A stretch of 63,395 nt of DNA, filler included, from Lenisia limosa (lineage: Eukaryota; Protista; Breviatea): NCBI GenBank assembly GCA_001655205.1. It is 10 parts of 10 records of this genome, joined end to end, with 100 filler letters (N's around TTAATTAATTAA, not from the genome) between each part and the next. Parts side by side here need not be neighbours in the genome. Positions count along the whole stretch, not along the records: positions 1 to 18,883 come from LPNZ01011649.1; 9 more parts are not named here. The stretch is one strand, 5' to 3'. Within the stretch, counting starts at the first letter, position 1, and each line of letters starts with the position of its first letter. A program made the translations under genes and the position numbers. The notes under the pieces are model-generated. The model was not told the origin of the DNA. It saw only the letters and a program-made list of their open reading frames with translations, and searched no databases. This document shows, piece after piece, positions 1-18,883 of the stretch.

Positions 1-66
1 CCAACAGAGTTGATTTGGGCTCTTTTTGTTTCATAAATTTTCCAATTTTACTCCCCCCCCGCCCAG

Positions 67-145
67 ATCTGCGTCCTCGAGGCCCAAGGGGAGGTGGTGT
101 AAATGGGCCTCATGGTCTCAATAACATGGGGCTCGGATTCCATTA
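67..145 (+). CDS. Probable terminal exon of an unidentified gene entering from upstream of the window
   Basis: Follows the recurrent intron 3' cassette (...ttttactccccccccgcccag). All three frames stop by about 145. Frame not determinable. Confidence 0.35.
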
Positions 146-290
146 ACTCCAGACTGTAAATTACCTTTTGTTGTGTTTTTGCTTATTTTCGATTATCGTT
201 TGTTTCTTCCTATTTAATGCACGTCTTTGCTGATTCAATGGCGTGAACCTAGTTTCAAGAGAATGGAGTCCTTCTTTAAAGCAGTATAAT

Positions 291-474
291 TCAGAAAATT
301 GTCATGGATGCACGGATGTTGTTAGAAAATTGTTCTAAGACCCCTTCTTTGAAACGAATTACTTTTTTGCTAATAACTAACCGTTTCGTCAGTTTGAAAG
401 ACTCTAAGCTTTGACGTAAATCACGTTCAACATGCGCCATTCTTCGAGAAAATTGAACGAAAACCCGAGCTTTC
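291..474 (-). CDS. Probable terminal exon (KARVFVQFSRRMAHVERDLRQSLE...MTIF*), possibly the last exon of the ZNHIT2-like gene
   Basis: Open frame after a tttcag acceptor, ending in TGA. Linkage to the upstream exons is inferred only. Confidence 0.35.
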
Positions 475-1130
475 TGAAATACCACCCAACTTTAAATCCG
501 AGCTGACAAAGAACAACGTGAAATCAATCAGAAACAATAATACCAGAGAAAATAATATTAACATAAAACACACTATATCAAGAAAGGAGAAGCTTCTGGC
601 TCTGAAGTGATGAGCAATGAATAGGTCTGTGATAGGTCTATATTAATAGGTCTGTGACAAGTCTGTGAGAGAGTGATAGGTTGTGATAGGGGGAGGATCG
701 CATATAATAGACGAGCCCGCAAGCAAGAGAAATGAGAGAAAAAGAAAAAGGAACATAAATAAATATAAAAATGAGAAATAAAACAAGGTTGTGTCTGGCA
801 ATGAGCCCCTACTCTCAGTTTGCAGATTTTTTCGATATATTGCCCGAGTCTGTACCATGTCAACGNNNNNNNNNNNNNNNNNNNNNNNNNNNNNNNNNNN
901 NNNNNNNNNNNNNNNNNNNNNNNNNNNNNNNNNNNNNNNNNNNNNNNNNNNNNNNNNNNNNNNNNNCGAAGGAAATTTTGATGAAGAATATTGGTGTTAA
1001 GGATAAAGAAAAGACAAAGACACATATTAATACAATGGAAGGGAGGAGCTACATGGTCAATGGGCGTTGCGGTTCGGGCAGTATGTAATTAATCCTTGAT
1101 GAATTCTCAGTAAACTCCGGATGATACCTA

Positions 1131-1221
1131 GGGCTTCACTTCGGTCCGAAAAATACCAATAAAATATCGATAGATTTCGAAGATTTATCGAGAAATTCTC
1201 TTTTAAACCGAAGTGACGCCC
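1131..1221. mobile_element. MITE family A copy (about 90-95 bp hairpin element)
   Basis: TA|GGGCTTCACTTCGG...CCGAAGTGACGCCC|TA: terminal inverted repeats flanked by TA; intronic. Confidence 0.8.
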
Positions 1222-1805
1222 TAAGGATACCCCAGTAAATCCTTGACAAATCCCAGAAATATGTATTATTCAGTTATCCTCGAATATTTCCCATTCCCAC
1301 CAGGGACCCCCTCTAAAAGTATTCTTCATAAATCCTCTAAAAATCATCCATTCCCTCCATTCCCGACCTATCAAAGTGGTCAGCGCCGTGTTGCCACACC
1401 CGTAGAGGTTACCTTTGACGTATGACTGCAAAAACAGCAATTTGGCCTGAAATATTACGTGGAAAAAATTGAAACATTTCTAAAACAAAACAAAATAATC
1501 CAAACCCCGAGGTAAACAAAGCATCAAGCAACGAACCAGTAAGAGGTGGAGGAGGGGGGAGAGATAGAAGGATGATATGATATATTTATTCATGATTTTT
1601 TACGGTGACTTGTGAGTCAGAAGTATCAATACAGCTCAGAACGCAACATGAGAACAGCAATGTTTGTACGTTGATATGAGAAATAAAACAATGTTTTAGC
1701 TGGCTGGCTACACCACTATCAGAATGGATTATAGTATAGATTATATTATACATTTGGGTAAGTCGCTCAACAATATATATCCTACAGATTAAGACGGCTT
1801 CCACT

Positions 1806-4800
1806 CACCACATGTTTACTGTATTTCGATATCAGCTTCTTCGGATTACTCGACTGTCCCTGGTGCAACCCCTAAAACGTCAGACTTTAATAACTGCATC
1901 TTGTTTATCATTTTTAGAGCTTCACTTGTGGTTCAAAAAATGTCCAGAAAAATCCTTGAATATATCGGTTTTTTTATCCGTCTTTTTCGTAATGGAGTGT
2001 AACACCAACAATAACCCTATAACACTCCTGCGGACCTGAAGCTGCTGTCGTCCGATCCGACCGCCTGTTTGTGTGGATGGCTTCTTCGCCTGTTCGGTTA
2101 CTATTTGCTATTTTTCAGAAAACCAAGTTACAATAAAGGGAAATAATGAAATAAAGTTATTAAGAAACAGACCATTGAGAAGCCCAAGGTATAGCAAAGA
2201 GAAAGCCAACATTTAGTGGCGAGAGGGGAGTAGAGATGAGGAACTATTTGGTAGATGGTAGAAGTCAAGAGAGAGAGAGAGGTAGAGAGGGGTAAAATTG
2301 GAAAATAATATATGAAACGAAAAAGCTCTCCCCCCCCCCCAAACATTGACCGCAATTTCGATTTCTTCATCGTCATCTTGTGGTTCGGCTATGGGAGTTT
2401 CGGAGAACCGCACTGATGATCGCGGAGACGCTGTGACCTAGGGGGGGGGGGGGTAAAACCCAGATGTTATTTTTCCAACTTTACTCCCCCTTCCATAGAG
2501 ATAGGAAATGAAATCAGGCTATTAGTATACTATATATCAGATATGATATTAGTAGTAGCTATACTGTATCTCAACTCACTTTGAGGGTGCTGATGGCAGA
2601 TTTGAAAATACTTGACAAATCCGAAAGACATGACGCCACGTTTTCTTGTGAACCTGGAAATTAGGCATCATATGATATGAAAAAGCAAAAGACTAAAATA
2701 CATATACTATATCATATAGTATATCATATCATATTATGTAACAATTAGAAATAAAACAAAGTTGTATTGGCCGAAGCCGTCCACACCATCATGCTTATCA
2801 GAGATATTGAATTATAGTAATACTAATTCACCCAACCATTTGCCTTACAACTCTGTACACACAGACAGCTTTCTGCGTGCCTCGTAATAATCTTCATCAA
2901 GTCTTCCCAACGGTCCGAAAAATGGCAGTAAAATATCTTTTTAACAAGTTTTTTTGCAAAACAAATATTTTTTCACCCAGCCGCCCTTAATGTACCTCCA
3001 CAGCCTTGCCCACTTAATATGGATGAAATGTCATCGTAAAGCGCAAGGGAAAAGTCGGCAGGAAAGCCTAGCTGAGATGTTTGAAGCAGGTCCAATGTGC
3101 AACTGAGAAGCTCGGATGCATTTGTGCCTATAATCGTCAGGGCAAAATACTGCTGCAAGTAATGACGAGTAATAAATAGTAAATCAATTAGGACTTTGTG
3201 TACTTTTTTGATGAAAATAATTGTTAAGAGATTAATATATATTAGAAACACGACCATCCGAGCACTCTCACTTGCCACAGCCTTATGCTACACCCCATCA
3301 TCACAATTAAAACACGATAAGTTTCGAAGATTTATCGAGAAATTCAGTCTTTTTTTGAACCGAAGTGAAGACCCACACTACCACCACCTTATAAGTACTC
3401 CGTCACCACCATCACCATTTCCCCCACGGGTATAAGGCGACTTCGGGGCAATAAGTTCCAAAAGGTCCGAGGCTAAATCGGCTGCAAAGGACACGTCACT
3501 GCTCCAGTCACTGTTCATCCGCCGCACAACTGCCGTATATGCCCAAAGGACGTAAAACAGGTCGAACGGCAAGAGCGGCGATGGTGCCCTGTGTTGTAAA
3601 AAAAGACTGAATTTCTCGATAAATCCTCAACAAATATCGATGTTTGACCGGTCTTTTTCGGACCGGAAGCCCTGCCCAAAATACACAGACATATCTTTGA
3701 ATGAAATAATAACAGTACTATCAGGTCACAGCATACACATAATACGTACATAAATAAATAAATAGATATCATATATATACATAATATATATATCATATAG
3801 CTATATAGCTATATAAATACATATCTTGGAATACAAATAATAAAAACAGACCCCTAATTAAGGCTTCACTTCGGTTCGGGAGTATAGTTTTCAAGGTTTT
3901 ATCGAGACCTTCAGTCTTTTTTCGAACCGAAGTGAAGCACTACCCAGCATACACAGACATATCTTGGAATGGTGGTGATGGCATCACAGGCGGCACAGGG
4001 CCCTTAATACCGTTGTCCGTCATCTACGAGGGTTAAGAGGATGTTTTATTGTGAATGTTGAAATGGAATGTAATACCATTGGTGGGTTAGGAATCATGAA
4101 TTATTTTGAATGGAAGTAGAGTATGCTTTGAATGCTTGAATATGCTGTAATTCCGCAATGTCTGTCTCTCATCTGTGAGTGTTTATAAGTCGAGCTTATA
4201 TTGATGTTTGAGATACCCCCCCCCACACACACACACACGTCCCCACTCCNNNNNNNNNNNNNNNNNNNNNNNNNNNNNNNNNNNNNNNNNNNNNNNNNNN
4301 NNNNNNNNNNNNNNNNNNNNNNNNCGGTTCCTCCTGAGCAACCAAAGCGTCTGGATTAGATGCGATGGTCTTGTGGAAGGACTTTAGCAATTCCTGCAGA
4401 GTGAAATGGGGAGATAAAAAAAGCGATGGGAAACAAAACAGTGCTTCACTTTATATTTATCGAGGATTTCTTGAGGATTTATCAAGACATTCCTTTTTTT
4501 TTGGACTAAAGCGACGCTCTAGTAATGTTCCTCCAGAAATGCTTACAGGTGGGAGAAGTGACTCGTCAATTACCCCGTCCTCAAACCCCTCGGCAATCTT
4601 ACGGAGAACTGGAAAGTAAAACATAGCCATCAGTCTGATGAAAAACTGAAGAAACTAGAACTAGGGCTTCGTGCAATTAAATGAAAAAATAATTGCAAAA
4701 TTTGAAGTGCAACATATTGTGACATAAATTCAATTTGAGATACTTAAATTTCAAATTTTGTTTATTTTCTTCAAAAATATTAATTGCACAGAGTTCTAAC

Positions 4801-6593
4801 TAGAACCCTCGAAATGCATATCAAAAATTGAAATGATAAATTGAATGAGAAACGAAAGATCAATATGATCTACAGTCATTTGAATCGATTCTTCATTTCG
4901 ATGACACCCACATCTCCCCCTCCTGACACCCCAGGGTATGCCCACATCCTCCCCCTCCATCCCTAACTAGGACTTCACTTCGGCACCAAAAAGACCTGTA
5001 AAATATCGATTTTTTTCGAAGATTTATCGAGAAATTCGGGCTTTTTTTGAACCGAAGTGAAACCCCATCCCCTCCCTGTAGACCCACGCTCATAATTATG
5101 AGCATCAAGCTCGTTTTCCTCCAGTCCGGTATCGGCATCTTGGAGCATTTCCGACTGCATTAAGTCCTGGAAAAGTCAGCAAAAAAGCGAGGGATTGCAA
5201 CCAGGGCTTCCAGCAGTCCCAAAAAAAAGGCCGAATTGTTCTAAAAACTCGATCCTCAGTCTTTTTCGGACCATAGGAAAGCCCTTAGCAAAAAAAATGT
5301 TTATTTTGATGATAAAAAGACCATTTTCTTGCCCTAAACTAACCCACCCTTACCGCATGGGAAAGCCCGAGGCTCCCAAGCTTCGCCTCAAGATCATCAA
5401 GATCGACCTCATTGGACTCCTTCTCGTGCATGCGCTTCAGGAAGCCCAAGAGACGCTTCTTGTCTTCGGAGCTGGCTTTTTGCCCCTGAGGAATGAGGAA
5501 GAGTAATGAGCATTATACCTGAGGAATGAGAGGGTGGTAAGAAGGGAGGAATAGATGGGGCATTTATCTGGTAACAAGAAACTCTTTAAATCATATCTAC
5601 GGATTCAAAATATAGATTGGTTAATAAAACAACAGTAACCTATACCTGAGGTATGAAGGGAGGAATTGCTTTCTGAGATTTTGACATTTAATTCAATCTA
5701 GGGATATAATAAAATATACAGATGAGAGAAGAAAAAAACACCATACTATGTGTAGTATACTTTTAATACACCCCATCATTTGCCTTACAACTGTGCTCAC
5801 AGCTTTCTGTTTGCCTCCCCAGCATACAAATATATATTCACATGATACAGAGATAAGAAATAAAACAAGGTTGTATTTGGCCGAAGCCGTCATATAGACA
5901 CCAGAAAAGAAAGAAAAACAGTACTTCCATCCCCCCTCGAACACATGATGAAGAGTATTGGAGTATATATGATGTGCTAATCCTGATACAAATATTTTGA
6001 AACTCCAAACATAGCACAAAGTAAAACAAAGAAAGAAATAAACAAACAAACAAACAACAGAATAAGATGGTACTCACCCCAGCAAGAAAACAAGCTGTAA
6101 AAAATGTCCGCAAATGCACTTACACACAAAAAAACCCAACCCGCTCAGTACACATAGAAATTAATACCTGATTCAATCAGAATTTTTTGGGAAAGGGTCC
6201 AACCCACACACACACCTTGCTAACCGAAAGGAAAACAATGCCAACGCCCCCTCCAAACCGACCTTAACATGGCTCTTGATTTGGTCCTTATAGAAGTCCT
6301 CAGTGCACCTCTGTCCATGGGTCTTGATCGTCAGCTTCATGGTTCCAAAACAGAAGAAAGGGAGTGCGAAACTCTGCGCAGCTTACCTGGTAGCAAGCTA
6401 ATGAACACGAAGACAGTCCACATTTAGGGCAAGTGTACTTGGAGATCTCAGATTGACAGCTGGGAACATGACTTTGAAAACCCTAGGCTTACATGCTGCA
6501 GGCTTTCTTCGTTTTCTCGATTATAAGAGGAGATTTATCCTGATCCGGAGGAGCATCTGCAATAAACCGGTCTGCCACTGAAGAAACAGACAT
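1806..6593 (-). CDS. ZNHIT2: Zinc finger HIT domain protein, ZNHIT2-type (multi-exon; 3' end uncertain)
   Basis: Spliced exons from ATG 6593 give ...KACSICQSEISKYTCPKCGLSSCSLACYQTHGQRCTEDFYKDQIKSHVK, a zf-HIT domain plus the ZNHIT2-like C-x-E-x-FY-x-DQ extension. Later exons: GQKASSEDKKRLLGFLKRMHEK (5356-5487), APSPLLPFDLFYVLWAYTAVVRRMNSDW (3430-3590), ENVASCLSDLSSIFK (2581-2654). Junctions are GT-AG, including a 33-nt intron at 6460-6492. Confidence 0.85.
2742..2883 (-). repeat. Dispersed repeat family B (about 140 bp), near full-length copy
   Basis: Reverse complement aligns by eye with 10599-10723 and 62954-63100 (gaggcacgcagaaagctgt...gtaaggcaaatg.ttgggtgaatta...tgatggtgtggacggcttcggcca.atacaac.ttgttttatttct). 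Confidence 0.8.
3861..3940. mobile_element. MITE family A copy (internally deleted)
   Basis: TA|AGGCTTCACTTCGGTTCG...CGAACCGAAGTGAAGCAC|TA. Confidence 0.7.
4970..5065. mobile_element. MITE family A copy
   Basis: TA|GGACTTCACTTCGG...CCGAAGTGAAACCC, inside a ZNHIT2 intron. Confidence 0.75.
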
Positions 6594-7301
6594 TGTTTGA
6601 AGGTTGTGGTCACCTTTCGACAGTTTTCCTTGGAAATAATAGTAGTACTTAGTGCCTGTTAACTCGAAGACTGGTTACAAACTGTTTTGATGGGGGGGGG
6701 GGGGGGNNNNNNNNNNNNNNNNNNNNNNNNNNNNNNNNNNNNNNNNNNNNNNNNNNNNNNNNNNNNNNNNNNNNNNNNNNNNNNNNNNNNNNNNNNNNNN
6801 NNNNNNNCATCGGTTTTAATTCATCTTCATTATGTGAAGCAAACGAACAAATGTGTAACAAACGATTATGGTTGTTGCCCATTGGTTTCCCATGTTTCCC
6901 AAAACTACGGAACCAAAATGAAATTCCCACATTTTACAAGATTGGGTAAAACTGAAACCCAAATAAAAAATCAAACAACAAAACAATCTGAAAGTAGCAA
7001 GGAGGTAATCAGTCTTGTCCTAGGCTGCAGGGCATTTTTGTTTTAGGAATGAATAGGTGGGGGGGGGGCAACTTCAGCGGAAAGTGAGCGGGAATTCCCC
7101 ACCCCATCCGATCAAGGCCAATATAAGAGGATAATAAAAAGAAACCGAAGGGTGGAGATAAGCAAGAGATAAGAAAGAAAGTGAGAAGAGAAAAGACACT
7201 GAATCAGAGCTGACGGGGGTGGCAGTTGCGGGTCATCATTTGAAAGTCTGAACAAGTCAATCAACAATAAAATTGAATTGAAAAGAAAAATGGTAAAAGT
7301 G

Positions 7302-7406
7302 ATTGTCAGAATGGTGGATGAAGAGTCAGCTTTCCAAAAGGTGCACCAAGTGGGTTTACTTGATCAAAGCCTCCTGGTCAGACAGCATCCAAAGTTAATC
7401 ATTCAA
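7302..7406 (-). ncRNA. Candidate box C/D snoRNA (type Z)
   Basis: ATGATTA (box C variant, 7396-7402), 14-nt guide, CTGA (D'), then CTGA (D, 7306-7309). Box D is 58 nt from the acceptor, matching the neighbouring snoRNAs. Confidence 0.45.
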
Positions 7407-7645
7407 TTCAACGTTTCGAGATTCTTTTCGGTTCAGAAAGCCGTGTCTATTCTCGAGAATTATCGAAAATTCCTTAGCTTTTCTGAACCGAAATGAAACA
7501 TTTTTTCATAATACCCACAGAAAAAGGGCTTACTTGAGATTTGCTTGAGATTGAGGAGCCAAGGGAAGTGAGCGCTTATGACCGAAGCAAACTCCTAAGG
7601 TGGTGAGAAAAAATAGAGAGTCAAGGCTAGGGTATGCGAAAGAAA

Positions 7646-7735
7646 GGTCTCAGGTTTAAATGACGTGAAGTTTCTCAGCACAACTGCGAACAGTTTCAGA
7701 TCGGTGCTTGAATATTGTTTCATCACAGATTGCAA
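7646..7735 (-). ncRNA. Box C/D snoRNA type X, copy 1
   Basis: Minus strand: C GTGATGA - guide AACAATATTCAAGCACCGAT - D' CTGA - hairpin AACTG-TTCG-CAGTT - C' GTGCTGA - guide GAAACTTCACGTCATTTAAAC - D CTGA; intronic. Confidence 0.85.
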
Positions 7736-7872
7736 ACAAAAGAAAAAAAACTGCCAATAACGCTTACCTGACAGGATGAGTGACTTTTCACTTGAAAGAG
7801 TGCCTTGCTTGCGTGTGTTAATTCTGAGAGATTAGATAAGAGAAACTTGTGAAAGTTGGAGAAATGAAAAGA

Positions 7873-7938
7873 GATATCAGATCTTCTTAGAGGTTGATTG
7901 CGTCATGGGCATCCACATTCACTTTTATCATCATTTAC
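7873..7938 (-). ncRNA. SNORD61: Box C/D snoRNA, U61/SNORD61-like, copy 1
   Basis: C ATGATGA (7928-7934) and D CTGA (7877-7880). D guide CCTCTAAGAAG is complementary to the conserved SSU rRNA segment CUUCUUAGAGG, the U61 target as I recall it (human 18S Um1442). Confidence 0.8.
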
Positions 7939-8072
7939 AACAAAGATCGCTGATTAATTATATACAAACCTGGTGCTCGCTTGATTAATGCGCTTCAATG
8001 ATGAATCTTCGTAGAGCATCCCTAAAGATATCAAAGGAAGAAAAAGACCATTGACATATCGAATAAAAGAAT

Positions 8073-8162
8073 GGTCTCAGGTTTAAATGACGTGAAGTTT
8101 CTCAGCACAACTGCGAACAGTTTCAGATCGGTGCTTGAATATTGTTTCATCACAGATTGCAA
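8073..8162 (-). ncRNA. Box C/D snoRNA type X, copy 2
   Basis: Identical 90-mer to copy 1, in a separate intron. Confidence 0.85.
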
Positions 8163-8297
8163 TCATGGATAAAACTAATAATACTAACCTGTCAAGAAAG
8201 AAGCAGCTGTGAGTTCATTCTGGGCGTTTCATTGGCAAACACATTCCTAAATATGTTAAAGTAAGAAGAAGATTGTTGACACATCAAATATAAGAAT

Positions 8298-8387
8298 GGT
8301 CTCAGGTTTAAATGACGTGAAGTTTCTCAGCACAACTGCGAACAGTTTCAGATCGGTGCTTGAATATTGTTTCATCACAGATTGCAA
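8298..8387 (-). ncRNA. Box C/D snoRNA type X, copy 3
   Basis: Identical 90-mer to copy 1, in a separate intron. Confidence 0.85.
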
Positions 8388-8524
8388 ACAAAAGAAAAAA
8401 AACTGCCAATAATGCTTACCTGACAGGATGAGTGACTTTTCATTTGAAAGAGTGTCTTGCTTGCGTGTGTTAATTCTGAGAGATTAGATAAGAGAAACTT
8501 GTGAAAGCTGGAGAAATGAAAAGA

Positions 8525-8590
8525 GATATCAGATCTTCTTAGAGGTTGATTGCGTCATGGGCATCCACATTCACTTTTATCATCATTTAC
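8525..8590 (-). ncRNA. SNORD61: Box C/D snoRNA, U61/SNORD61-like, copy 2
   Basis: Identical to 7873-7938, offset by 652 bp. Confidence 0.8.
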
Positions 8591-8724
8591 AACAAAGATC
8601 GCTGATTAATTATATACAAACCTGGTGCTCGCTTGATTAATGCGCTTCAATGATGAATCTTCGTAGAGCATCCCTAAAGATATCAAAGGAAGAAAAAGAC
8701 CATTGACATATCGAATAAAAGAAT

Positions 8725-8814
8725 GGTCTCAGGTTTAAATGACGTGAAGTTTCTCAGCACAACTGCGAACAGTTTCAGATCGGTGCTTGAATATTGTTTC
8801 ATCACAGATTGCAA
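8725..8814 (-). ncRNA. Box C/D snoRNA type X, copy 4
   Basis: Identical 90-mer to copy 1, in a separate intron. Confidence 0.85.
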
Positions 8815-9329
8815 ACAAAAAAAACTGACATTGTCCCTTACCTCTTGCCACAATCTTGGTTGTTGACTTGAAGGAGTGGGTGCAAATTGTGGTACCCTTC
8901 CGAATCTAAAGTAATGAGACAAAAGAAAAAAAATGTTTTGGGGCCATAAAAGAAAGTCAAAGATAATGTCAAGAGAAGTACGTGGAACGAAAGAAGCAGA
9001 CAAGCTACCACAAAAGAAAACAGTTGCTCAACCGCACGAGACCAAAAATGAGAAACACGCCAATTTATGTTGTAATTGTAAATAAATGTCATAAAAGCAC
9101 AAAGGGAATGGAAAGAAGAGCATTTGGGTTCATAAAAAAACTCCACTTCTAAAAATGTGTTAAAATAAGTTGCTGAGGGTTAAAATATGATTAAAAAATA
9201 AAAAAAAGTCCCCTGAAAATCAATAACTAACCATAGAAAAGGGGAAGCCTTCTTTTTTAATTGTGGCGCGTGGTGACTGTCACAAATTCAATGTCACTTC
9301 TTCGCATTTCCTTCGTTCAGAAAAAAAGA

Positions 9330-9760
9330 CTCAGTTTTTTCAAAAAACCAGCATAAAAGGAAATGGCAACTGTCCGTTTGACACCTTCCTTCAATGGCTC
9401 GGCGGGGCATTCATCCTTGTCGCCAAACTCTTTATTCTGCTTCCTCTCTCCCTCCTCTTTCTATCGTCACTAATTCTTATATTATTATTATGTATATTGA
9501 TAAAAAATAAACAGGGGAAAAGTATAGATTTTATGCAATCATGACTATATCCGCTCTTCTCTTTCTGTTTCTGTGCCTAAGTCTGAGCCTTTCAAGTTTT
9601 GCACAAACTTTGCAGTAGGATCAACCTCCTTTGTTTTTACGCTCTTTCCCTTGTTGCTAATGATTTAGCTTGACACCTGAGGGGGCACAGGTCCATTTAT
9701 CGCCACCAACAGCGGTTGATAATGCCTCACCGTTCGGAAGTAGGAACTCATACCTAGGAG
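9330..9760 (-). CDS. Unidentified small multi-exon gene (charged exons DDRKRRERKQNKEFGDKDECPAEP..., KSVKTKEVDPTAKFVQNLKG...)
   Basis: Open frames with plausible splice sites; phases could not be reconciled. Confidence 0.25.
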
Positions 9761-10598
9761 GAGTATATACATGTATATAAATTCCTCCTAGCTCATACCA
9801 TATCTTGGATATTCGCCTGAGATTATTTTTAATAAGATTGGGCGATTACTAAATTAAAACTTCGTGTAACGTTGTATCCTTTTGTTGATTGTTGTGAGTT
9901 AATTCCTGATGCTCACAACTTGTTGTCATACCGTCACTATTGGATGAATTAGTACTATAATTTAGTATCTCTCATAAGCGTGATAAGTATGATTGTGTAG
10001 ACGGCTAGATACATTTTTTCCTCAATCACAAATAGTTGAACTGCCGGTTCTTTATTACCATAGTTTCAATTGAGACTTTACTGCAAAAAAACTTTGGCTT
10101 CGCTACGCTCCAAAAAAGACCATCAAAATATCGATATTTCTCAAGGATATTTCAAGAATTTTATTCTTTTTAGCTTTTTAGGGAACGTAGAAAAACCCAC
10201 TTTTTTTGAACAATAAATACTATATTATATGATATAAGTTAGAAAGGTGTGAAAAATCACACATTCACCATATCCTTTCACGCTGCACGTTCCCCCTTTA
10301 TCTAGTCCCAATCACAGCTCCAATTTAATTGACATTAGTGACGTTATGCCTCTTGGGACCCTCTCCCCCTCCAGGTGTCAAAATCGTTTTATCAGGTTGG
10401 TAAATGGCATTTGGAGATGTACGAAAACTGCTCTCTATTTGGAGGGGGGTGGTGGGAGGATACTATATACTATTACTATATGATATGCTAATAGTATCAT
10501 ATATTATATCATATCATATCAAATGTTACGTAAGAATATATTACCTAATTTTCAATATTATGCATCACCAGTGTTATGTTGGGACAATGATTTAATTT

Positions 10599-10723
10599 CA
10601 CAGAAAGCTGTGTGTACAGATTTGTAAGGCATATATTGGGTGAATTAATATTATACTATAATCCAATAAGCGTGATGGTGTGGATGGCCTCAGCCAGATA
10701 CAAACTTTTATATTTCTCATTGC
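10599..10723 (+). repeat. Dispersed repeat family B copy
   Basis: Aligns with 62954-63100. Confidence 0.75.
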
Positions 10724-10962
10724 TTTCTACTGTATACGGAGTTGTATGGTAATTTTTTTTTTGTCTGAGTGTAATCTGGGTCACCGATCGTAATCGAATA
10801 ATTAGGTTTTTTTATTTCTTCGCGAAAAATCTGGTATTTGGAATTTGGCACATAGATATTTTAAATCTTCTCTCAACGTAATGTGATCTTCACCTCAATT
10901 TTAATCATAATCTACAAATCTGCTGGTCTTACGCTCATGTTTTTTTTTAGATTTAAAAAGGG

Positions 10963-13900
10963 TGACTGACGGAACTGAAGCCACGTTAACCCTGGAGGTA
11001 AGGAAGGGATAATGAAAATAAAACAACATTAGAAATTTTAGGAAATAAATAAACATAGGGATACTATGAAACAAATTATCATACTCTCGCGCCAAATATC
11101 GATATATCGATATTTTTTCGGGTATTTTTCCGAGGAATTAATCTGGTTTTTGTACCGAAGTGAAGTGTACTGACACCACCAGGGTGACTGTCCGCTGGGC
11201 GAGTATCTCTCCTTCAACACAGCCGCTGCCACCTGCTCGTTTTCTTCGGGATGGAGTCATGTTCCCGTCTGTTTGACAAGTATGTTTTTCTTTTTCTTTT
11301 TCTTTTTCTTTCTTTTTCTTTCTTTATGTTTTCCCTTAATTTTATTATTTAGCTTCTTTGCTCCCTCTTTCTTTCCTCATTTTTTAAGCTCAGTGCCAGT
11401 TCACCTTCGAACCCGAATCATCAAACTGCACTCTTGATGGTAGGTCAACAACACCCTGTACCCTCTAGGGGGCCCACTCAAGGGGAGATGGTCAGCAGAG
11501 CTGAGAAATGAGAAGCAAATTTGAAGTGACGTTTTTGTAACGAGAACCCCATTTCAGACCGTTTAATTACACATGTTGCTTTGTAAGTATATCATATATC
11601 ATATACTAGCTATATAGTATACTATATCTTGGGCTACAGAAAATGACCGAATTGATAAATCATTGATATATTTGATAGTTTACCAATCTTTTTGTTACCT
11701 GTATATCAAACCAAAGCGCTTCTCATCACGGCCATCTCATGCATATGAAATTATTACTGTTTTGATCAATTCTTGAAAATCCTAAATTATTGATGAGGGA
11801 AAATCATGGGGATTTCACAACCAATTTAATATTGTACTATATATCGATATATATTAATCTAATACATTTTTTAAGCGTGGTGGGGAAGGCTTCGGCCAGA
11901 TACAACCTTGTTTTATTTCGCATATCGATTTATTAATCGGTTGTCTTTCTTCTTTCAATACATGCATCTGTGATACTTTCACGACCATCCTCCTTCAGAC
12001 ACCTAGGAGAGGTCTTTTGCTCTCAAAACATCACCATCTTCAGCTTTCTATGACTTCGGAACCGTTTGTGAACTGAACTGCCAAGGATTGGCGGAACCAA
12101 AATACTCGGTTTGTGTAGAAAATATGTATAACTATTGTGGAAGACACTGTATGGATTTGTGGCAAATGGATGAATTAGGTCAATGTCGTAAATTATCATA
12201 AACTTGATGTGTGGGCTGCTTCAGTGAGCTACTTCTTTTTCAATTGCTCTCTTATCTTTTTTTATTTGAAGTGTTTGCTGCTACATATCTGGGTTCACTT
12301 CAGTCCGAAAGAGAGGCCTTATTCTGTAGCCCCAACTTACATGATGTGTTTTCCCCCCAGTAGTTCTGCTGTGTTTACCCCCTCAAAACTATATCAACTC
12401 ATCTAATTAGATGTGTGATGAATTTGGAGTGTTCTTTGATGGATGCGGAGTCAAAGGTTGGCTGATTGTTATCTTTTTCTTATACTATGTGTAGTATAGT
12501 GACCGGGATAAGTCTTGACCTATTTTCCTTGGGAAATCAGAGAGCAAATCGGTCAAAACTTATCCCGGTCACTGTATATCATACCCTTCAAAATAATATT
12601 GTTTTATCCTCNNNNNNNNNNNNNNNNNNNNNNNNNNNNNNNNNNNNNNNCTAGAATACTTCTGAAATGCAGGTCGTTAGAGATGAGAAATAATAACAGG
12701 AATAACAGGCAGTAACTGAATATCCCTTAAGTTACTATTTCAGGAAGTCTGCATACATGCGGCCGCGCTCAGTACTACAACCTTGGAAACGTGGGGGGGA
12801 TTGGCATGAATTTTGGAAAATATATTGAAAAAAGAGAGAGTGAATTTGCTTTGTTTTTTTATTATTTGTGATTCTGAACGACTTTGTCCGCAGTATCTCA
12901 ACCTAGGCCATCAAATGATGAAATACTATAACACACTAATATGCATATCATTATGATAGTATACATGTATATATTATGATGTAGTAACTCTGTTGAGGCC
13001 GTCAATAGCAGTATGATGATACTACACACATCGATATGATATAATTACACTATAATATTTAGTGTATATACTATGCATATGATATACTATATGATATGAT
13101 ATAAGATGTATAAAAATAATATGTGTGGTGGGTGGGGGTTCAGTTCGAAAAAACACAATAAATTCAGTCTTTTTTCGAACCGTAGTGAAGCTCTAGTGGT
13201 GGGGTATCCTTCCGTTAACTCTATCAAGGCCGTCAATACGGACGTTTTCTACCCGTCCTTCACGAACCTGGGATCCGCCAATGGAAATCCTGATGAGGTC
13301 AAAATGGTGGCAGGAGCGAATATGAACTTCTGCTCAGTGGACATGAGTGGGCTGGGACATATGTGATCGTTTTTACAGGGTTGTGGGTTTTTAAAAATAA
13401 GCTTGAGATTTTGCTAGTAATATATTCCCCTTCTCCAGTCTTCCCTCCACCAAACATATTCCGCAACCTTCTAAAAATTTCATTTGTATAAAAATTATAT
13501 TACAACATGTTTGCTTTTTAAAGAACACATTTGCCAACATAGTTGATTTGGGGCTCTTTTTTTTTTGTTCCATAAATTTCCAACTGTACCCCCTTCCGAT
13601 GGGGATACTATTCTATGTCCTTTGTATTTGTTCACCAAACAGGTAATAAAGTTCGCTGCGTTGGGTACAATGAGAAGAAAATGGTATGTCGTCATTTGAT
13701 AAGGTAAATGATTTGCTATATTACTGTGGTACTATATTACTCTCCGATATCTCTGATCAGCTTTATCAATTAATTTCTTCAATATTAATTTACGAAGTAT
13801 TTTGTTTTATGGGCAACTCTGACATTAACTTATTTTATATTTCTCATATCACTTTTTGGATCATTTTCACAACATTTAATGTCCATGTGATATGATACCA

Positions 13901-16900
13901 CACATTTCCACTCGTGTAATAATTGACCAATGATACTCAGATACTCTCGTGATAACCTGTCGTGGTCATTTCGACTCTTAAGTCGATCATAATACTTGTG
14001 AATGGTGGTCTCTATAGTATATGATATAGTATAGCTATATTGTACATACATATCATATAGTAGCTATAATATAATCTCATTCTGCACCTCATTCATTACG
14101 TACTTCTCCCCCAGGTTGCTGAAACTGGAGAGTACGTATCAGTACCGCGTCTTATGATTGATCTTGGCGCGCTCGGGGAGACAATTGTCAGCTTCAAGTC
14201 TGGAATTTATTTCTACTCTTTCATGACTGGTGGGAATAACGAATTTGTTTCTATTACTATGAGTTTCTATATATTACATGATGGTAGAGGAGGGATTTAC
14301 GCCTACTCTTTCAGAAATGCTGGTATTTGTTTCGATTTCACGAACACGTTTCCTCCTCTTTCTTCATGACCCTTTTTAGACAATAGAAATATCTCCACAT
14401 GAACTTTTCCACTGCTTTCTTCTTGACCTTTTTTAGACAACAAAAAGGTCTACACATGGGGCCAGAACACCTATTGCCAACTTATGAGAAATGGCAAGAT
14501 AGACAGCTCTGTCCCTACCCCGGTTTGAGGGGTGATAGAAAACTGGGAGAGGGGTGAGTCAGATTTATCCCTTTTTTTCTCAAATAGGAAGTGATCGCTC
14601 TTTTGATGGCGTCAAATCACATATCGATATATGGAGGAGTGGTAATAGAATACAGTATATTTTCCTCGTTTGAACAAGGGCTTCACTTGAGTTACAAAAA
14701 AAAGACTGAATTCTCGATAAATTCTCGAGAGCTGTCGATATTTTACCAGAGTCTTTTTGTTGACGTGGTGTATGGTGCTTCATTACTTTGGTTTCCTCAT
14801 TTTCATCGTTCTAACGGACCAGATTGCAGTTCCCGCGGGACGGACGATCGTTGATCACTACAGCGGATACGTGTCGGAGATGGTCAAATTGGGTATGCTC
14901 GGTCAGATGCCACCTTGTTACATCCCTCTCTCCCCTAACCTATCATATATATAAGCGTGATGGTTTTTATTGCTCATCTCTACTTACGCTCATTTTGTCG
15001 TGCAGTAAATATGGCTGGCTCCCCTATTTCCAACATAAATCACGATTTTAGATTATTTTCAACACAAATCACGATTTTTAAATATTATTAACAATATTTC
15101 CAACACTAATCACGATTTAGATAACGGGGAGTTCCATGGTGCAGGATACAACGTCTATGAATCCCTGACCCCGGGACCTACTGAGTTTCTGTCGTCACAG
15201 CTCGTCAATATGGACCTGCCTGCTGGAGAGGTATGCGATGTTTGTTAATTTATTATTTTCTTTTTTAGTTTAGTTTTGTTTTGTTTTTTATTCTTGCGGA
15301 GCAACAGCAGTTTTTTGGACCTGCCGGGGAGGTATACATGTATGCGGTGTCATTGAGTAATAGATTGCTTTTTTTTTTTTTGTTTGTTTGTTTGTTTGTT
15401 CGAAAAACACTTCTGACTAATCCTGTATGATAAATAATTATCATCAGTTTGGGACCTCCTGCCTGAATTTATATAATCCATTTTCTCACGTTTGTCATCC
15501 GCTTTAGGAAATTAAAGAAGTACAAATGTCGACTTTCTTCACTGCCGTATTGACTGGTGGGTTCAGTGGTATTGTATGAAATAATAGGTTATTTAAACAT
15601 TTGTTTTTCAAGATTTTTAATGTGAGATATTATTATATATGTTTAACAAAAAGCTCATCCCCTTTAGCATCAAAGAAAATCTTTGCAAAGGGGAAGCACG
15701 CCAACTTACAGGCCACTTGCTTGTCCACCAATTCAAACGTCTTACTTGAGGTAGGATTGGGGCTTTCCGCCTTCCCTCATCCCCCCCCCCCCCNNNNNNN
15801 NNNNNNNNNNNNNNNNNNNNNNNNNNNNNNNNNNNNNNNNNNNNNNNNNNNNNNNNNNNNNNNNNNNNNNNNNNNNNNNNNNNNNNNNNNNNNNNNNNNN
15901 NNNNNNNNNNNNNNNNNNNNNNNNNNNNNNNNNNNNNNNNNNNNNNNNNNNTTTTGTTTTAAGCTTTTTTATGAGAAATATCCTTTTTTTTAAGCACCTC
16001 CAGTCATAGTACGATCTTATATTTGCCACTACTCCTTGTCACCTACTAATATCGTTCGTCCTGACAATAAAGGACATATGATGTAATTTCTCGAAATTGA
16101 AGAGGCTCAATATAGTAGCTGAATGCATAACGCAAGAAGACGGGTTGAGTCCCCATAGAGAAAACAGTTAAAAGATGAAAATTTTGACTTGTTTTTGAGT
16201 TTTCCCTAAACAGTATCATTTTGAGAGTATTAAAATATATGAAGTAAAAATACAATCCAAGTTCATCATACTCATATCACATTACTGATATATACAATCG
16301 GCTTCTCTAATCTCATTATAACAGGCTCACTCGTCACTTCAAGGTAACGTTGAGCAGTTTTCCTGTAGTTACCTCTCTTGTGGCTTCATCTTGAGTGAGG
16401 GGGCAATTCTCTGAAGTCAAAAAAAGCCCATTATTGGACCTTGGGGGGGGGGGGGGCNNNNNNNNNNNNNNNNNNNNNNNNNNNNNNNNNNNNNNNNNNN
16501 NNNNNNNNNNNNNNNNNNNNNNNNNNNNNNNNNNNNNNNNNACAGAGTACTATCACACTATGAAAGAGCACCACACTGTGAAAAAAAAACTGAATGAACT
16601 CTCTCTCATTCCTTAGCAACCGGGGAGGTCATGATCTGCAGTGCAAAAGCTGCACAACCCGGCGGCCTCAGTTCAGCCGTACCTGTGGGGGGGGGGGGNN
16701 NNNNNNNNNNNNNNNNNNNNNNNNNNNNNNNNNNNNNNNNNNNNNNNNNNNNNNNNNNNNNNNNNNNNNNNNNNNNNNNNAGTATATGATTTTCCAATGA
16801 AAATCAGCCAAAACTGATCCCGGTCACTGTATGTAGTATGTTAGATTGGGGGTCCAGTTGTAATGTACACTAAATAGATAGGGGAAAGTCCAGTCTGTGA

Positions 16901-17930
16901 TCTGAAACGTCTACAGAATCAACAAAAAAAAAGTACCTTTTTGTTTTGCAAGAGAAATACTTTACATTGTCTACCTGTATCTAAGAGGTTTTATACTGTG
17001 TGTGGGGATCTGCTAGTTTGGAAGATCGTGTTGTACCTGTGTTCTTAAAACGATAAAGGTGTCCTTTACCTATTTCTAATTAGCTCATTGCGGCGTAGGT
17101 GGACATTTCGAGTTATTTCCCTTGCTTGGACGGCGAGAAAATCGACACTGTTTCCGGGTTTTCCCACGAGGCTCTCTACTTCACTGGACGTGAGAAGACT
17201 TTTTTTTTTGACGTTTTTTTTCTTCTTCCAATTTTCTTTTTTCCTTTTTCCTTTTTCCTTTTTTGTTCTTCAACCCCCCTCCCCTTTTATGTTTTTCTTT
17301 GGGATGCGATGCTGTAGAAGCAGCTGGCCTGGGCTTTGTTNNNNNNNNNNNNNNNNNNNNNNNNNNNNNNNNNNNNNNNNNNNNNNNNNNNNNNNNNNNN
17401 NNNNNNNNNNNNNNNNNNNNNNNNNNNNNNNNNNNNNNNNNNNNNNNNNNNNNNNNNNNNNNNNNNNNNNNNNNNNNNNNNNNNNNNNNNNNNNNNNNNN
17501 NNNNNNNNNNNNNNNNNNNNNNNNNNNNNNNNNNNNNNNNNNNNNNNNNNNNNNNNNNNNNNNNNNNNNNNNNNNNNNNNNNNNNNNNNNNNTAACACTT
17601 CTGTGCACACAGCTCTGCGTGCCTTCCCACATCGGGTATAGATATCGGTTTCCTTATCATCATTATTTGAGATTCACTATTGGGGATCTTTTTAAACCCC
17701 AAGTCCATGCGCTGTTGGATCAGACAGTTGAGAATTAATTTCCTCGCAGGTTGAAACTGTTGTCGACAGCCCCACCCGCATCAAGGCCTTTGTGGGAGGA
17801 AACCCTGTCGTAGCCATTTTGTAATTTGAGTTTCAACGCTTCGATATTGTAATATTAATAATGCTACTATTCACACTTATTGACAGATGGAGGATGTATC
17901 GAGTATTTCAGATAAGAACGGACGTGGTAT
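10963..17930 (+). CDS. RCC1/BLIP-II-like repeat protein with a Cys-rich N-terminal region (ends uncertain; crosses several N gaps)
   Basis: GT-AG exons encode NKKVYTWGQNTYCQLMRNGKIDSSVPTP (14437-14522), VKL/DNGEFHGAGYNVYESLTPG (14823-15230), FTAVLT/ASKKIFAKGKHANLQ (15520-15750), TGEVMIC (16615) and EVKMVAGANMNFCSVD (13229-13362), all RCC1-like blades. Cys-rich exons at 11180-12190. Confidence 0.55.
12497..12574. mobile_element. MITE family C (78 bp, Tc1/mariner-type ends)
   Basis: TA|TAGTGACCGGGATAAGTCTTGACC...GGTCAAAACTTATCCCGGTCACTG|TA. Confidence 0.8.
13840..13990 (+). repeat. Dispersed repeat family G copy
   Basis: Matches the reverse complement of 56560-56740 (cactttttggatcattttcac...gtgatatgatacc...ataattgacc...tcatttcgact). 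Confidence 0.6.
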
Positions 17931-18883
17931 GTCTTACCGTGCTCCTTCCAATAATAGTGTCTACTCTGAGAGTATTGATTAATAATTAATCTATACTAGA
18001 CCCCAAAGGGCTACAGATCCAGGTAAAAGGTTCATCTGGAATATCTTGAGGTCAACTTATCCCCCAGATCTGCAGCCCTCTGCTAGACCCTCTATATCTT
18101 ATATTATAGGGTCCCACGAAGATGGATATAAAATTGATTAAGACAGAGAGTCGCCAACCTTATCGAATCGGATCAAGACTTATCCCACTGTATACATCCC
18201 CAAAAACTAAAGCACAAATGCATCATCCATCATACCTAACTTCCTGTTTTATAAATATTAAAATACTAACATAAAGACTTCCAGCCGTTACAAGAAAGAC
18301 AAGGCGTAACACCGCTAATTGAGTGAGTAAACGTTGAGGGTGGGCTCGACGAGGAGATTGATGCTGAGCAAGTAGACCCTTTAGATGGATGATACATCTC
18401 TTTTCTCTTATTATAATTTGACGACTGAACCGCAACGTTCATCATATTAAAAGACCAGAACCCAAGCTAAAGAACTGTAATCTGTGGCAACTCAATTAAT
18501 AATTTGCCTACGGTGCTAATATCCCATAAGGTCACACAATTATTACTTTTAAGCCAATATTCTTCATCGAAATTTACTTCGTTTTACNNNNNNNNNNNNN
18601 NNNNNNNNNNNNNNNNNNNNNNNNNNNNNNNNNNNNNNNNNNNNNNNNNNNNNNNNNNNNNNNNNNNNNNNNNNNNNNNNNNNNNNNNNNNNNNNNNNNN
18701 GGAGTGATGGAGGCATGCACAGACCACACCTCCGGTGGCGGTGGTAGCGCTGAAATGGTCAAGGGTCTTATTGCAATTTTTTTTTTTGATTATTGTTAAC
18801 TGTGTTCACAAAAAAATACCTTTTAAAAACTACAGACACTAAAAAACAAAGGGAAAAAACCAATACCCTCCCCATTTAGATCA

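Follow-up and report, generated by a model that had tools for sequence, protein, structure and literature searches.

The sequence analyzed here, referred to throughout as the window, is a 63,395-nucleotide (nt) stretch of the Lenisia limosa assembly GCA_001655205.1, and the locus of interest lies in its first part (record LPNZ01011649.1, positions 1 to 18,883). An array of small RNA genes occupies window positions 8841-7248, entirely on the minus strand, where seven consecutive predicted introns (I1 to I7) contain, in order, X, a U61-like RNA, X, X, a U61-like RNA, X, and Z; X and the U61-like RNA have the features of small nucleolar RNAs (snoRNAs) belonging to the box C/D class, and Z is an atypical candidate. 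With fairly good confidence, we read the locus as a spliced and probably non-coding host gene of the UHG/GAS5 kind that carries one snoRNA per intron. The same seven introns and their contents had been proposed in an initial annotation, and recomputation by script confirmed the coordinates and placed them on the minus strand. Host acceptors and donors are predictions from the sequence. The gene model is given below, with exon and intron lengths also recomputed by script; "5' flank" denotes the distance from the donor to the snoRNA, "tail" the distance between box D and the intron end, and a slash the splice site.

8906-9231, minus strand: possible upstream intron 0, GTTAGT...CTCATTACTTTAG, with a candidate donor at 9231
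8842-8905, minus strand: exon 1 of the earlier model, 64 nt, with the acceptor-like ...CTCATTACTTTAG directly upstream
8674-8841, minus strand: intron I1, 168 nt, GAG/GTAAGG...TTTAG/G, 5' flank 36 nt, tail 55 nt
8622-8673, minus strand: exon 2, 52 nt, same sequence as exon 5
8476-8621, minus strand: intron I2, 146 nt, CAG/GTTTGT...CTCAG/A, 5' flank 35 nt, tail 53 nt
8420-8475, minus strand: exon 3, 56 nt
8247-8419, minus strand: intron I3, 173 nt, 5' flank 41 nt, tail 55 nt (tail type 2)
8189-8246, minus strand: exon 4, 58 nt, holding the stop of the sole frame open through exons 1-3
8022-8188, minus strand: intron I4, 167 nt, 5' flank 35 nt, tail 55 nt (same as the I1 tail)
7970-8021, minus strand: exon 5, 52 nt
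7824-7969, minus strand: intron I5, 146 nt, tail 53 nt
7768-7823, minus strand: exon 6, 56 nt
7595-7767, minus strand: intron I6, 173 nt, 5' flank 41 nt, tail 55 nt (type 3, chance-level identity to type 1)
7534-7594, minus strand: exon 7, 61 nt, donor CAA/GTAAGC
7248-7533, minus strand: intron I7, 286 nt, 5' flank 132 nt, tail 58 nt
7100-7247, minus strand: exon 8, the last recognizable exon (its start)

The range of 52-64 nt reported earlier for exons 1 to 7 was reproduced. All predicted donors match R/GTWWG (GAG/GTAAGG, CAG/GTTTGT, CAG/GTAAGC, CAG/GTTAGT, and CAA/GTAAGC), and each of the seven predicted introns holds a single C/D-like unit; an additional hairpin in I7 is a miniature inverted-repeat transposable element (MITE) and not an RNA gene. 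Since exon 1 follows an acceptor, at least one further exon is expected upstream, and exon 1 is probably not the first. A pyrimidine run, CTTCCCCTTTTCT, lies at 9247-9235, upstream of the candidate intron 0 donor, and could, speculatively, be a TOP-like start. Two other segments of the model were considered as RNA genes and set aside. Intron 0 (8906-9231) as an H/ACA or other RNA folds no better than shuffled sequence (z = +1.7), and an AUGAUGA...CUGA pair within exon 8 (7239-7204, minus strand; 36 nt, with 25 nt between the boxes) is too short and stemless for a snoRNA and probably arose by chance. Exon-encoded snoRNAs do exist in Neurospora.

The RNAs within the introns, and the MITE-like element beside Z, are as follows.

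8727-8809, minus strand: snoRNA X copy 1, in I1; box C GUGAUGA 8805-8799, D' CUGA 8778-8775, C'-like UGCUGAG, box D CUGA 8732-8729
8525-8591, minus strand: U61-like C/D snoRNA copy 1, in I2; box C AUGAUGA 8586-8580, D guide AACCUCUAAGAAG, box D 8532-8529
8300-8382, minus strand: snoRNA X copy 2, in I3
8075-8157, minus strand: snoRNA X copy 3, in I4
7873-7939, minus strand: U61-like C/D snoRNA copy 2, in I5
7648-7730, minus strand: snoRNA X copy 4, in I6
7302-7410, minus strand: candidate C/D RNA Z, in I7; box C variant AUGAUUA 7402-7396, D' CUGA 7381-7378, C'-like UGAUCA, box D CUGA 7309-7306
7409-7509, no strand assigned: palindromic MITE-like insertion of about 95 nt, in the 5' flank of I7

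X has its boxes in canonical order and at canonical spacing (GUGAUGA, a 21-nt guide, CUGA, UGCUGAG, a guide, and CUGA); both of its guides are long, and all four copies are identical. When the four X introns and their flanking exons were aligned, X and about 10 nt on either side were unchanged, and the surrounding flanks had diverged. In the E-value mode of Rfam, X drew weak matches to snR56 (28 bits), Z221/R21b (22.6 bits), and Afu_263 (23.3 bits); the C/D matches of both X and the U61-like RNA come from this mode, and all lie far below the gathering scores. The D' guide of X shows a resemblance, and no more, to the guides of the U25/snR56/Me18S-Gm1358 family and of SNORD121A. When metagenomes were scanned for orthologues of X with box C, the D' guide, and D' combined, three matches came up, all attributable to chance and located in coding DNA of bacterial appearance.

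The U61-like RNA can be placed more precisely. Box C through box D of this RNA takes up 58 nt, and its 13-nt D guide, AACCUCUAAGAAG, agrees with the snoR01 consensus at every position. It thus has the C and D boxes, the D guide, and the complementarity to 18S CUUCUUAGAGG that characterize the SNORD61/U61 clan (Rfam CL00067; snoU61, RF01170; snoR01, RF01583), but differs from the clan in its short box C-to-box D length and in scores of 23 bits for snoU61 and 27.6 bits for snoR01, below the gathering score of 55 that applies to both. Scans of viral contigs for eukaryotic rDNA yielded two small-subunit (SSU) fragments, which were used for the U61 target only, and no match to a conserved large-subunit (LSU) motif. 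On one of these, L004, a eukaryotic SSU rRNA fragment from IMG/VR (Rfam SSU_rRNA_eukarya, 534 bits) that is not the host's own rRNA, the guide AACCUCUAAGAAG forms with CTTCTTAGAGG a perfect 11-nt duplex at 4114-4124. Within the 18S target CUUCUUAGAGG, the second U of CUUCUU faces the fifth nucleotide upstream of box D. The SNORD61 clan modifies this 18S site (human Um1442 and Arabidopsis Um1381) and has been dated to the last eukaryotic common ancestor (LECA) (PMC3511168).

Whether Z is a real C/D RNA is, from its sequence features, about an even bet. It has a 4-bp terminal stem (AUUG/CAAU) and a long C'-to-D segment of 51 nt with an internal hairpin, and it drew no Rfam match even at E<=10. 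Z as a single-hairpin H/ACA RNA was ruled out, as it has no two-sided pseudouridylation pocket. I7 contains three CUGA motifs, and its tail measures 58 nt only if the last of them is taken as box D. The neighboring MITE-like palindrome folds into a strong hairpin (z = -4.1), and at least eight members of its family occur in the window. The 132-nt 5' flank of I7 is due to this insertion; without the MITE, the flank would be about 35-38 nt.

Several lines of evidence bear on whether these RNAs sit in introns at all. We defined an exon-like signal set as YTNAY with its A at -7 to -11, a YAG acceptor, an exon of 40-80 nt, and a donor matching R/GTWWG. Each of the four distinct spacers between snoRNAs holds a full set, and such sets arose in 1.1-3.3% of spacer shuffles, which gives a joint chance of about 1e-7 for the four together. 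This rarity strongly favors real introns over an unspliced tandem cluster. The composition also alternates along the array, with T-rich introns and purine-rich exons. Were the locus instead an unspliced polycistronic cluster, cut by endo- and exonucleases as in plants, Euglena, and trypanosomatids, its GT..AG pairs would be coincidental. The tandem repetition of snoRNA units would suit such a cluster, and several protist lineages do express their snoRNAs from clusters. Mixed organizations of snoRNA genes have been discussed (PMC2656528). Contigs of two public sequencing runs, one from polyA RNA and one DNA-like, were placed on the locus. No spliced RNA of the host was seen, which would also agree with a polycistron; the polyA run, a single run with a small contig set, has zero depth over 6808-9329, compared with about 19 on the neighboring gene. 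A spliced and probably unstable non-coding RNA could easily be absent from this run. Weighing further against a polycistron, a donor, a branch-point-like motif, and an acceptor recur in every distinct spacer, the donors differ in sequence yet all conform to R/GTWWG, the composition switches at the predicted exon borders, and the position of the branch-point-like motif is the same in the RNA-supported introns of the adjoining gene. We therefore consider an unspliced cluster improbable and continue with the spliced host.

Each of the three frames of the spliced model is interrupted. As the initial annotation had stated, a single frame (frame 0) runs uninterrupted through exons 1-3 and meets its stop in exon 4; the remaining two are closed sooner. 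The exon repeat unit amounts to 52 + 56 + 58 = 166 nt, which is not a multiple of three, and the indels between paralogous exons (52/58/61 nt) are not multiples of three either. Among ten open frames in the window that were compared with Pfam, including the unspliced host-strand frame 7115-7363 over exon 8, none gave a real match. If the spliced RNA did encode a small protein or peptide, one candidate would be a frame of about 100 codons spanning exon 4/5 to exon 8. In the spliced model, frame 1 has no stop for about 110 codons between exon 4 and 7115 and includes an internal Met. Set against this, no frame, frame 1 included, is open through the first four exons, neither the 166-nt repeat nor the exon indels preserve a frame, and the exon-8 part of the Pfam-negative frame (7115-7247) is the last part of that very open reading frame. 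A peptide-coding role thus appears highly improbable, and a non-coding status of the host probably fits. Of the earlier proposal of a dedicated non-coding host, the single C/D RNA per intron gains good support from the splice-signal statistics, and the non-coding assignment from the interrupted frames and the Pfam result; splicing itself we infer.

The regularity of the array owes much to recent duplication. Alignment of the two 652-nt units showed that a block of about 520 nt (approximately 8815-8297 against 8163-7645) is duplicated with 4 mismatches, or about 99% identity. The block begins just upstream of one X copy and finishes at the 3' end of another, and beyond it the identity of the units drops to about 50%, with gaps. 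We attribute the block to a recent event between X copies, either unequal crossing-over or gene conversion. The seven introns are therefore not independent and represent five distinct tails (I1=I4, I3, I6, I2~I5, and I7). The tails of I1 and I3 are 80% identical and hence related, leaving roughly four that are independent. The number of repeats rests on the assembly, as contigs of the DNA-like run stop at the repeat and leave zero depth over 7972-8359. One contig of that run (X1, depth 57.6) joins 8572 to 7305, linking the end of Z, just past its box D, to the middle of a U61-like RNA, with variant letters at 7336-7337 and 8573-8574. This joint could be an artifact of assembly, or it could represent another variant of the array or a Z/U61 hybrid gene at a different genomic site.

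In I1 to I7, box D is separated from the intron end by 55, 53, 55, 55, 53, 55, and 58 nt, exactly the values reported before. The three versions of the X tail (55/55/55 nt) align without gaps, and in the same paralogues both the exons (52/58/61 nt and 64/56/58 nt) and the 5' flanks (35/36/41 nt) have gained or lost nucleotides. Over its inner 40 nt, the I6 tail has 33% identity, compared with a shuffle mean of 30%, and it is still exactly 55 nt long. A constraint on tail length looks real because indels occurred in the exons and 5' flanks of the X paralogues and none in their tails, one of which has been randomized in sequence and remains 55 nt.

Alternatively, the host may be real and its 53-58 nt tails an inherited by-product of one compact ancestral unit of exon and intron, with no function as a ruler. 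This explanation assumes that indels are rare and that introns in this genome are of near-minimal size to either side of the snoRNA. The recent duplication of the 520-nt block, the paralogy of all four X introns, and the small number of independent tails, about four, are what it would expect, and the 5' flanks are as narrow as the tails (35, 35, 36, and 41 nt, and about 35-38 nt in I7 without its MITE). What it explains less well is that the same paralogues gained indels elsewhere and not in their tails, that the type 3 tail kept exactly 55 nt at chance-level identity, and that the unrelated U61 and Z tails measure 53 and 58 nt. The sole large insertion of the locus, the MITE, also lies upstream of Z and outside the I7 tail, and a dependence of snoRNA processing on intron position is already known (PMC8162545). 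Overall, we regard the by-product explanation as rather unlikely, while accepting that the uniform 5' flanks may mean that duplication of one compact unit accounts for part of the regularity.

If tail length is constrained, the landmark from which it is measured may be the branch point. YTNAY, with its A at -9 or -10, is present at 8/8 host acceptors, counting the one before exon 1, and three of the four RNA-supported acceptors in the neighboring plus-strand gene have the motif as well, at -9, -7/-11, and -10 (examples are at 8683, 8484, 8256, 7604, and 7257 in the host and 9660, 10332, and 11171 in the neighbor). A branch-point-like A 7-11 nt, and mostly 9-10 nt, from the 3' splice site seems typical of this organism. 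Should the YTNAY at -9/-10 be used, the putative branch point would follow box D by 44-48 nt. In mammals, assembly of C/D snoRNA-protein complexes (snoRNPs) is coupled to splicing, is aided by IBP160/Aquarius, and works best when the branch point is about 50 nt downstream (PMC8162545); expressed relative to the 3' splice site, the preferred position is about 70 nt upstream in vertebrates and in the tandem DmSnR60 genes of Drosophila (PMC1821038). The initial annotation had inferred a shorter spacing rule. Measured to the 3' splice site, the locus does fall below the usual distance (53-58 nt against about 70 nt), but measured to the putative branch point it nearly matches the established optimum. 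What looked like a shorter rule is probably the known one of about 50 nt combined with a branch point that sits closer to the acceptor here. That the spacing reflects a conserved branch-point ruler is a possibility to which we give somewhat less than even weight. A little more tentative still is the proposal that a snoRNA-to-branch-point ruler of about 45-50 nt is shared by mammals and this distant eukaryote, for which the paralogous tails that stay 55 nt long after randomization would speak.

Under the spliced-host reading, a primary transcript would be spliced at seven or more short GT..AG introns, whose contents would be the four identical X copies, two U61-like guides for 18S CUUCUUAGAGG, and the atypical candidate Z. 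Once the introns were excised and debranched, exonucleases would trim them back to the assembled snoRNP and so free the snoRNAs, and the short exons would be joined into an RNA without a useful reading frame. The array would have grown by tandem duplication, with the block of about 520 nt bounded by X copies arising through unequal crossing-over between them. With 35-41 nt between donor and snoRNA and 53-58 nt between snoRNA and acceptor, box D would be 44-48 nt before the putative branch point, the spacing that in mammals favors splicing-coupled C/D snoRNP assembly.

Several points weigh against this reading. On the universal 18S GUGGUGCAUGG, the D' guide of X would form 6 bp and, past one mismatch, another 3 bp, which is too weak; X has no obvious terminal stem, and the metagenome scan for X revealed no orthologous locus. 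Rfam at gathering thresholds found no match anywhere in the piece searched, and Z has a non-canonical C box that departs from the consensus at one position. The 3' end of the gene was not found, with an assembly gap downstream at 6707-6807, the 5' end is likewise undefined, and the polyA run, as noted above, is empty across the locus. With regard to spacing, the 5' flanks are as uniform as the tails (35-41 nt), and the branch point is a motif-based assignment from YTNAY.

The layout of the locus is already known from animal and fungal snoRNA hosts, of which it is a further UHG/GAS5-like case. As in the animal non-coding hosts UHG, GAS5, and Drosophila dUhg, it has many short exons without a long open reading frame, one C/D snoRNA per intron, paralogous snoRNA copies produced by tandem duplication, and a preferred distance upstream of the acceptor (PMC1821038, PMC8162545). 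It differs from them in that this distance is 53-58 nt rather than about 70 nt, and in that the introns are very compact (146-173 nt) with a 5' flank also fixed at 35-41 nt. The animal hosts have a 5'TOP start and a polyadenylated product sensitive to nonsense-mediated decay (NMD); the present locus offers, as a candidate counterpart of the former, the pyrimidine run at 9247-9235. Hosts of this type had earlier been credited to animals, where they are indeed established, but they are not restricted to them, since Neurospora crassa and other fungi have UHG-like C/D hosts (PMC2780460). The fungal hosts likewise carry one snoRNA per intron, contain short open reading frames only, and keep narrow ranges of distance to both splice sites (PMC2780460). 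Unlike the fungal clusters, which carry other snoRNAs and are themselves kept across fungi, the array described here consists mostly of recent duplicates of two snoRNAs. In relation to the rule of Hirose and Steitz (IBP160/Aquarius), the 44-48 nt between box D and the putative branch point resemble the mammalian optimum of about 50 nt (PMC8162545), but the branch point predicted from YTNAY at -9/-10 lies much nearer the acceptor than in mammals. What makes the locus notable is its compactness, together with tails whose length has held while their sequence decayed.

Beyond the host, the polyA RNA run includes a 1,722-nt contig that backs a spliced plus-strand gene extending from 9469 to 12107 and further; the product of this gene begins with a signal-peptide-like N terminus. 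Its exons, among others, are as follows.

9469-9614, plus strand: neighboring gene, exon
9669-9739, plus strand: neighboring gene, exon
10339-10393, plus strand: neighboring gene, exon
11181-11275, plus strand: neighboring gene, exon
12043-12107, plus strand: neighboring gene, exon

Because this gene is divergent from the snoRNA host, the interval 9232-9468 may be a shared bidirectional promoter. Very high-copy repeats are present at 9912-10299, 10494-10881, 11852-12045, and 12434-12611, with many contig joints between the blocks and a summed contig depth of 1,400-38,000 in the DNA-like run, compared with about 32-40 for unique sequence. A further GUGAUGA...CUGA pair on the plus strand (12415-12465; 51 nt, 4-bp stem) overlaps one of these repeats and is unlikely to be a snoRNA. 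Gaps of N are bordered by long G or C homopolymers (6691-6706, 4217-4224, 15780-15793, and other gap edges), which look like a sequencing or scaffolding artifact and not biology. Finally, the palindromic MITE family, of about 95-110 nt with ends like GGGCTTCACTTCGGTTC...GAACCGAAGTGAAGCCC, shows weak matches in Rfam to a plant microRNA (MIR319); in addition to the copy in I7, its members, or MITE-like sequences of this family, are located as follows.

1125-1223, no strand assigned: MITE-like family member
3317-3370, no strand assigned: MITE-like family member
3598-3665, no strand assigned: MITE-like family member
3884-3937, no strand assigned: MITE-like family member
4964-5062, no strand assigned: MITE-like family member
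11112-11165, no strand assigned: MITE-like family member
13137-13190, no strand assigned: MITE-like family member
14672-14745, no strand assigned: MITE-like family member

In sum, non-coding hosts with one snoRNA per intron have been documented mainly in animals and fungi, and if the sequence is that of a protist, the locus would extend this design to a group in which snoRNA annotation is sparse (PMC11028025). For annotation with RNA sequencing, it predicts eight exons, three snoRNA species, and the U61 site in 18S rRNA, in what is otherwise an ordinary housekeeping arrangement. The short distance between branch point and acceptor offers a natural test of the landmark used by the C/D positioning rule. 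If the proposed ruler is true, the locus separates the distance to the branch point from the distance to the 3' splice site and favors the branch point as the reference, and conservation of such a ruler would imply an ancient, perhaps LECA-level, mechanism of the Aquarius/IBP160 type.

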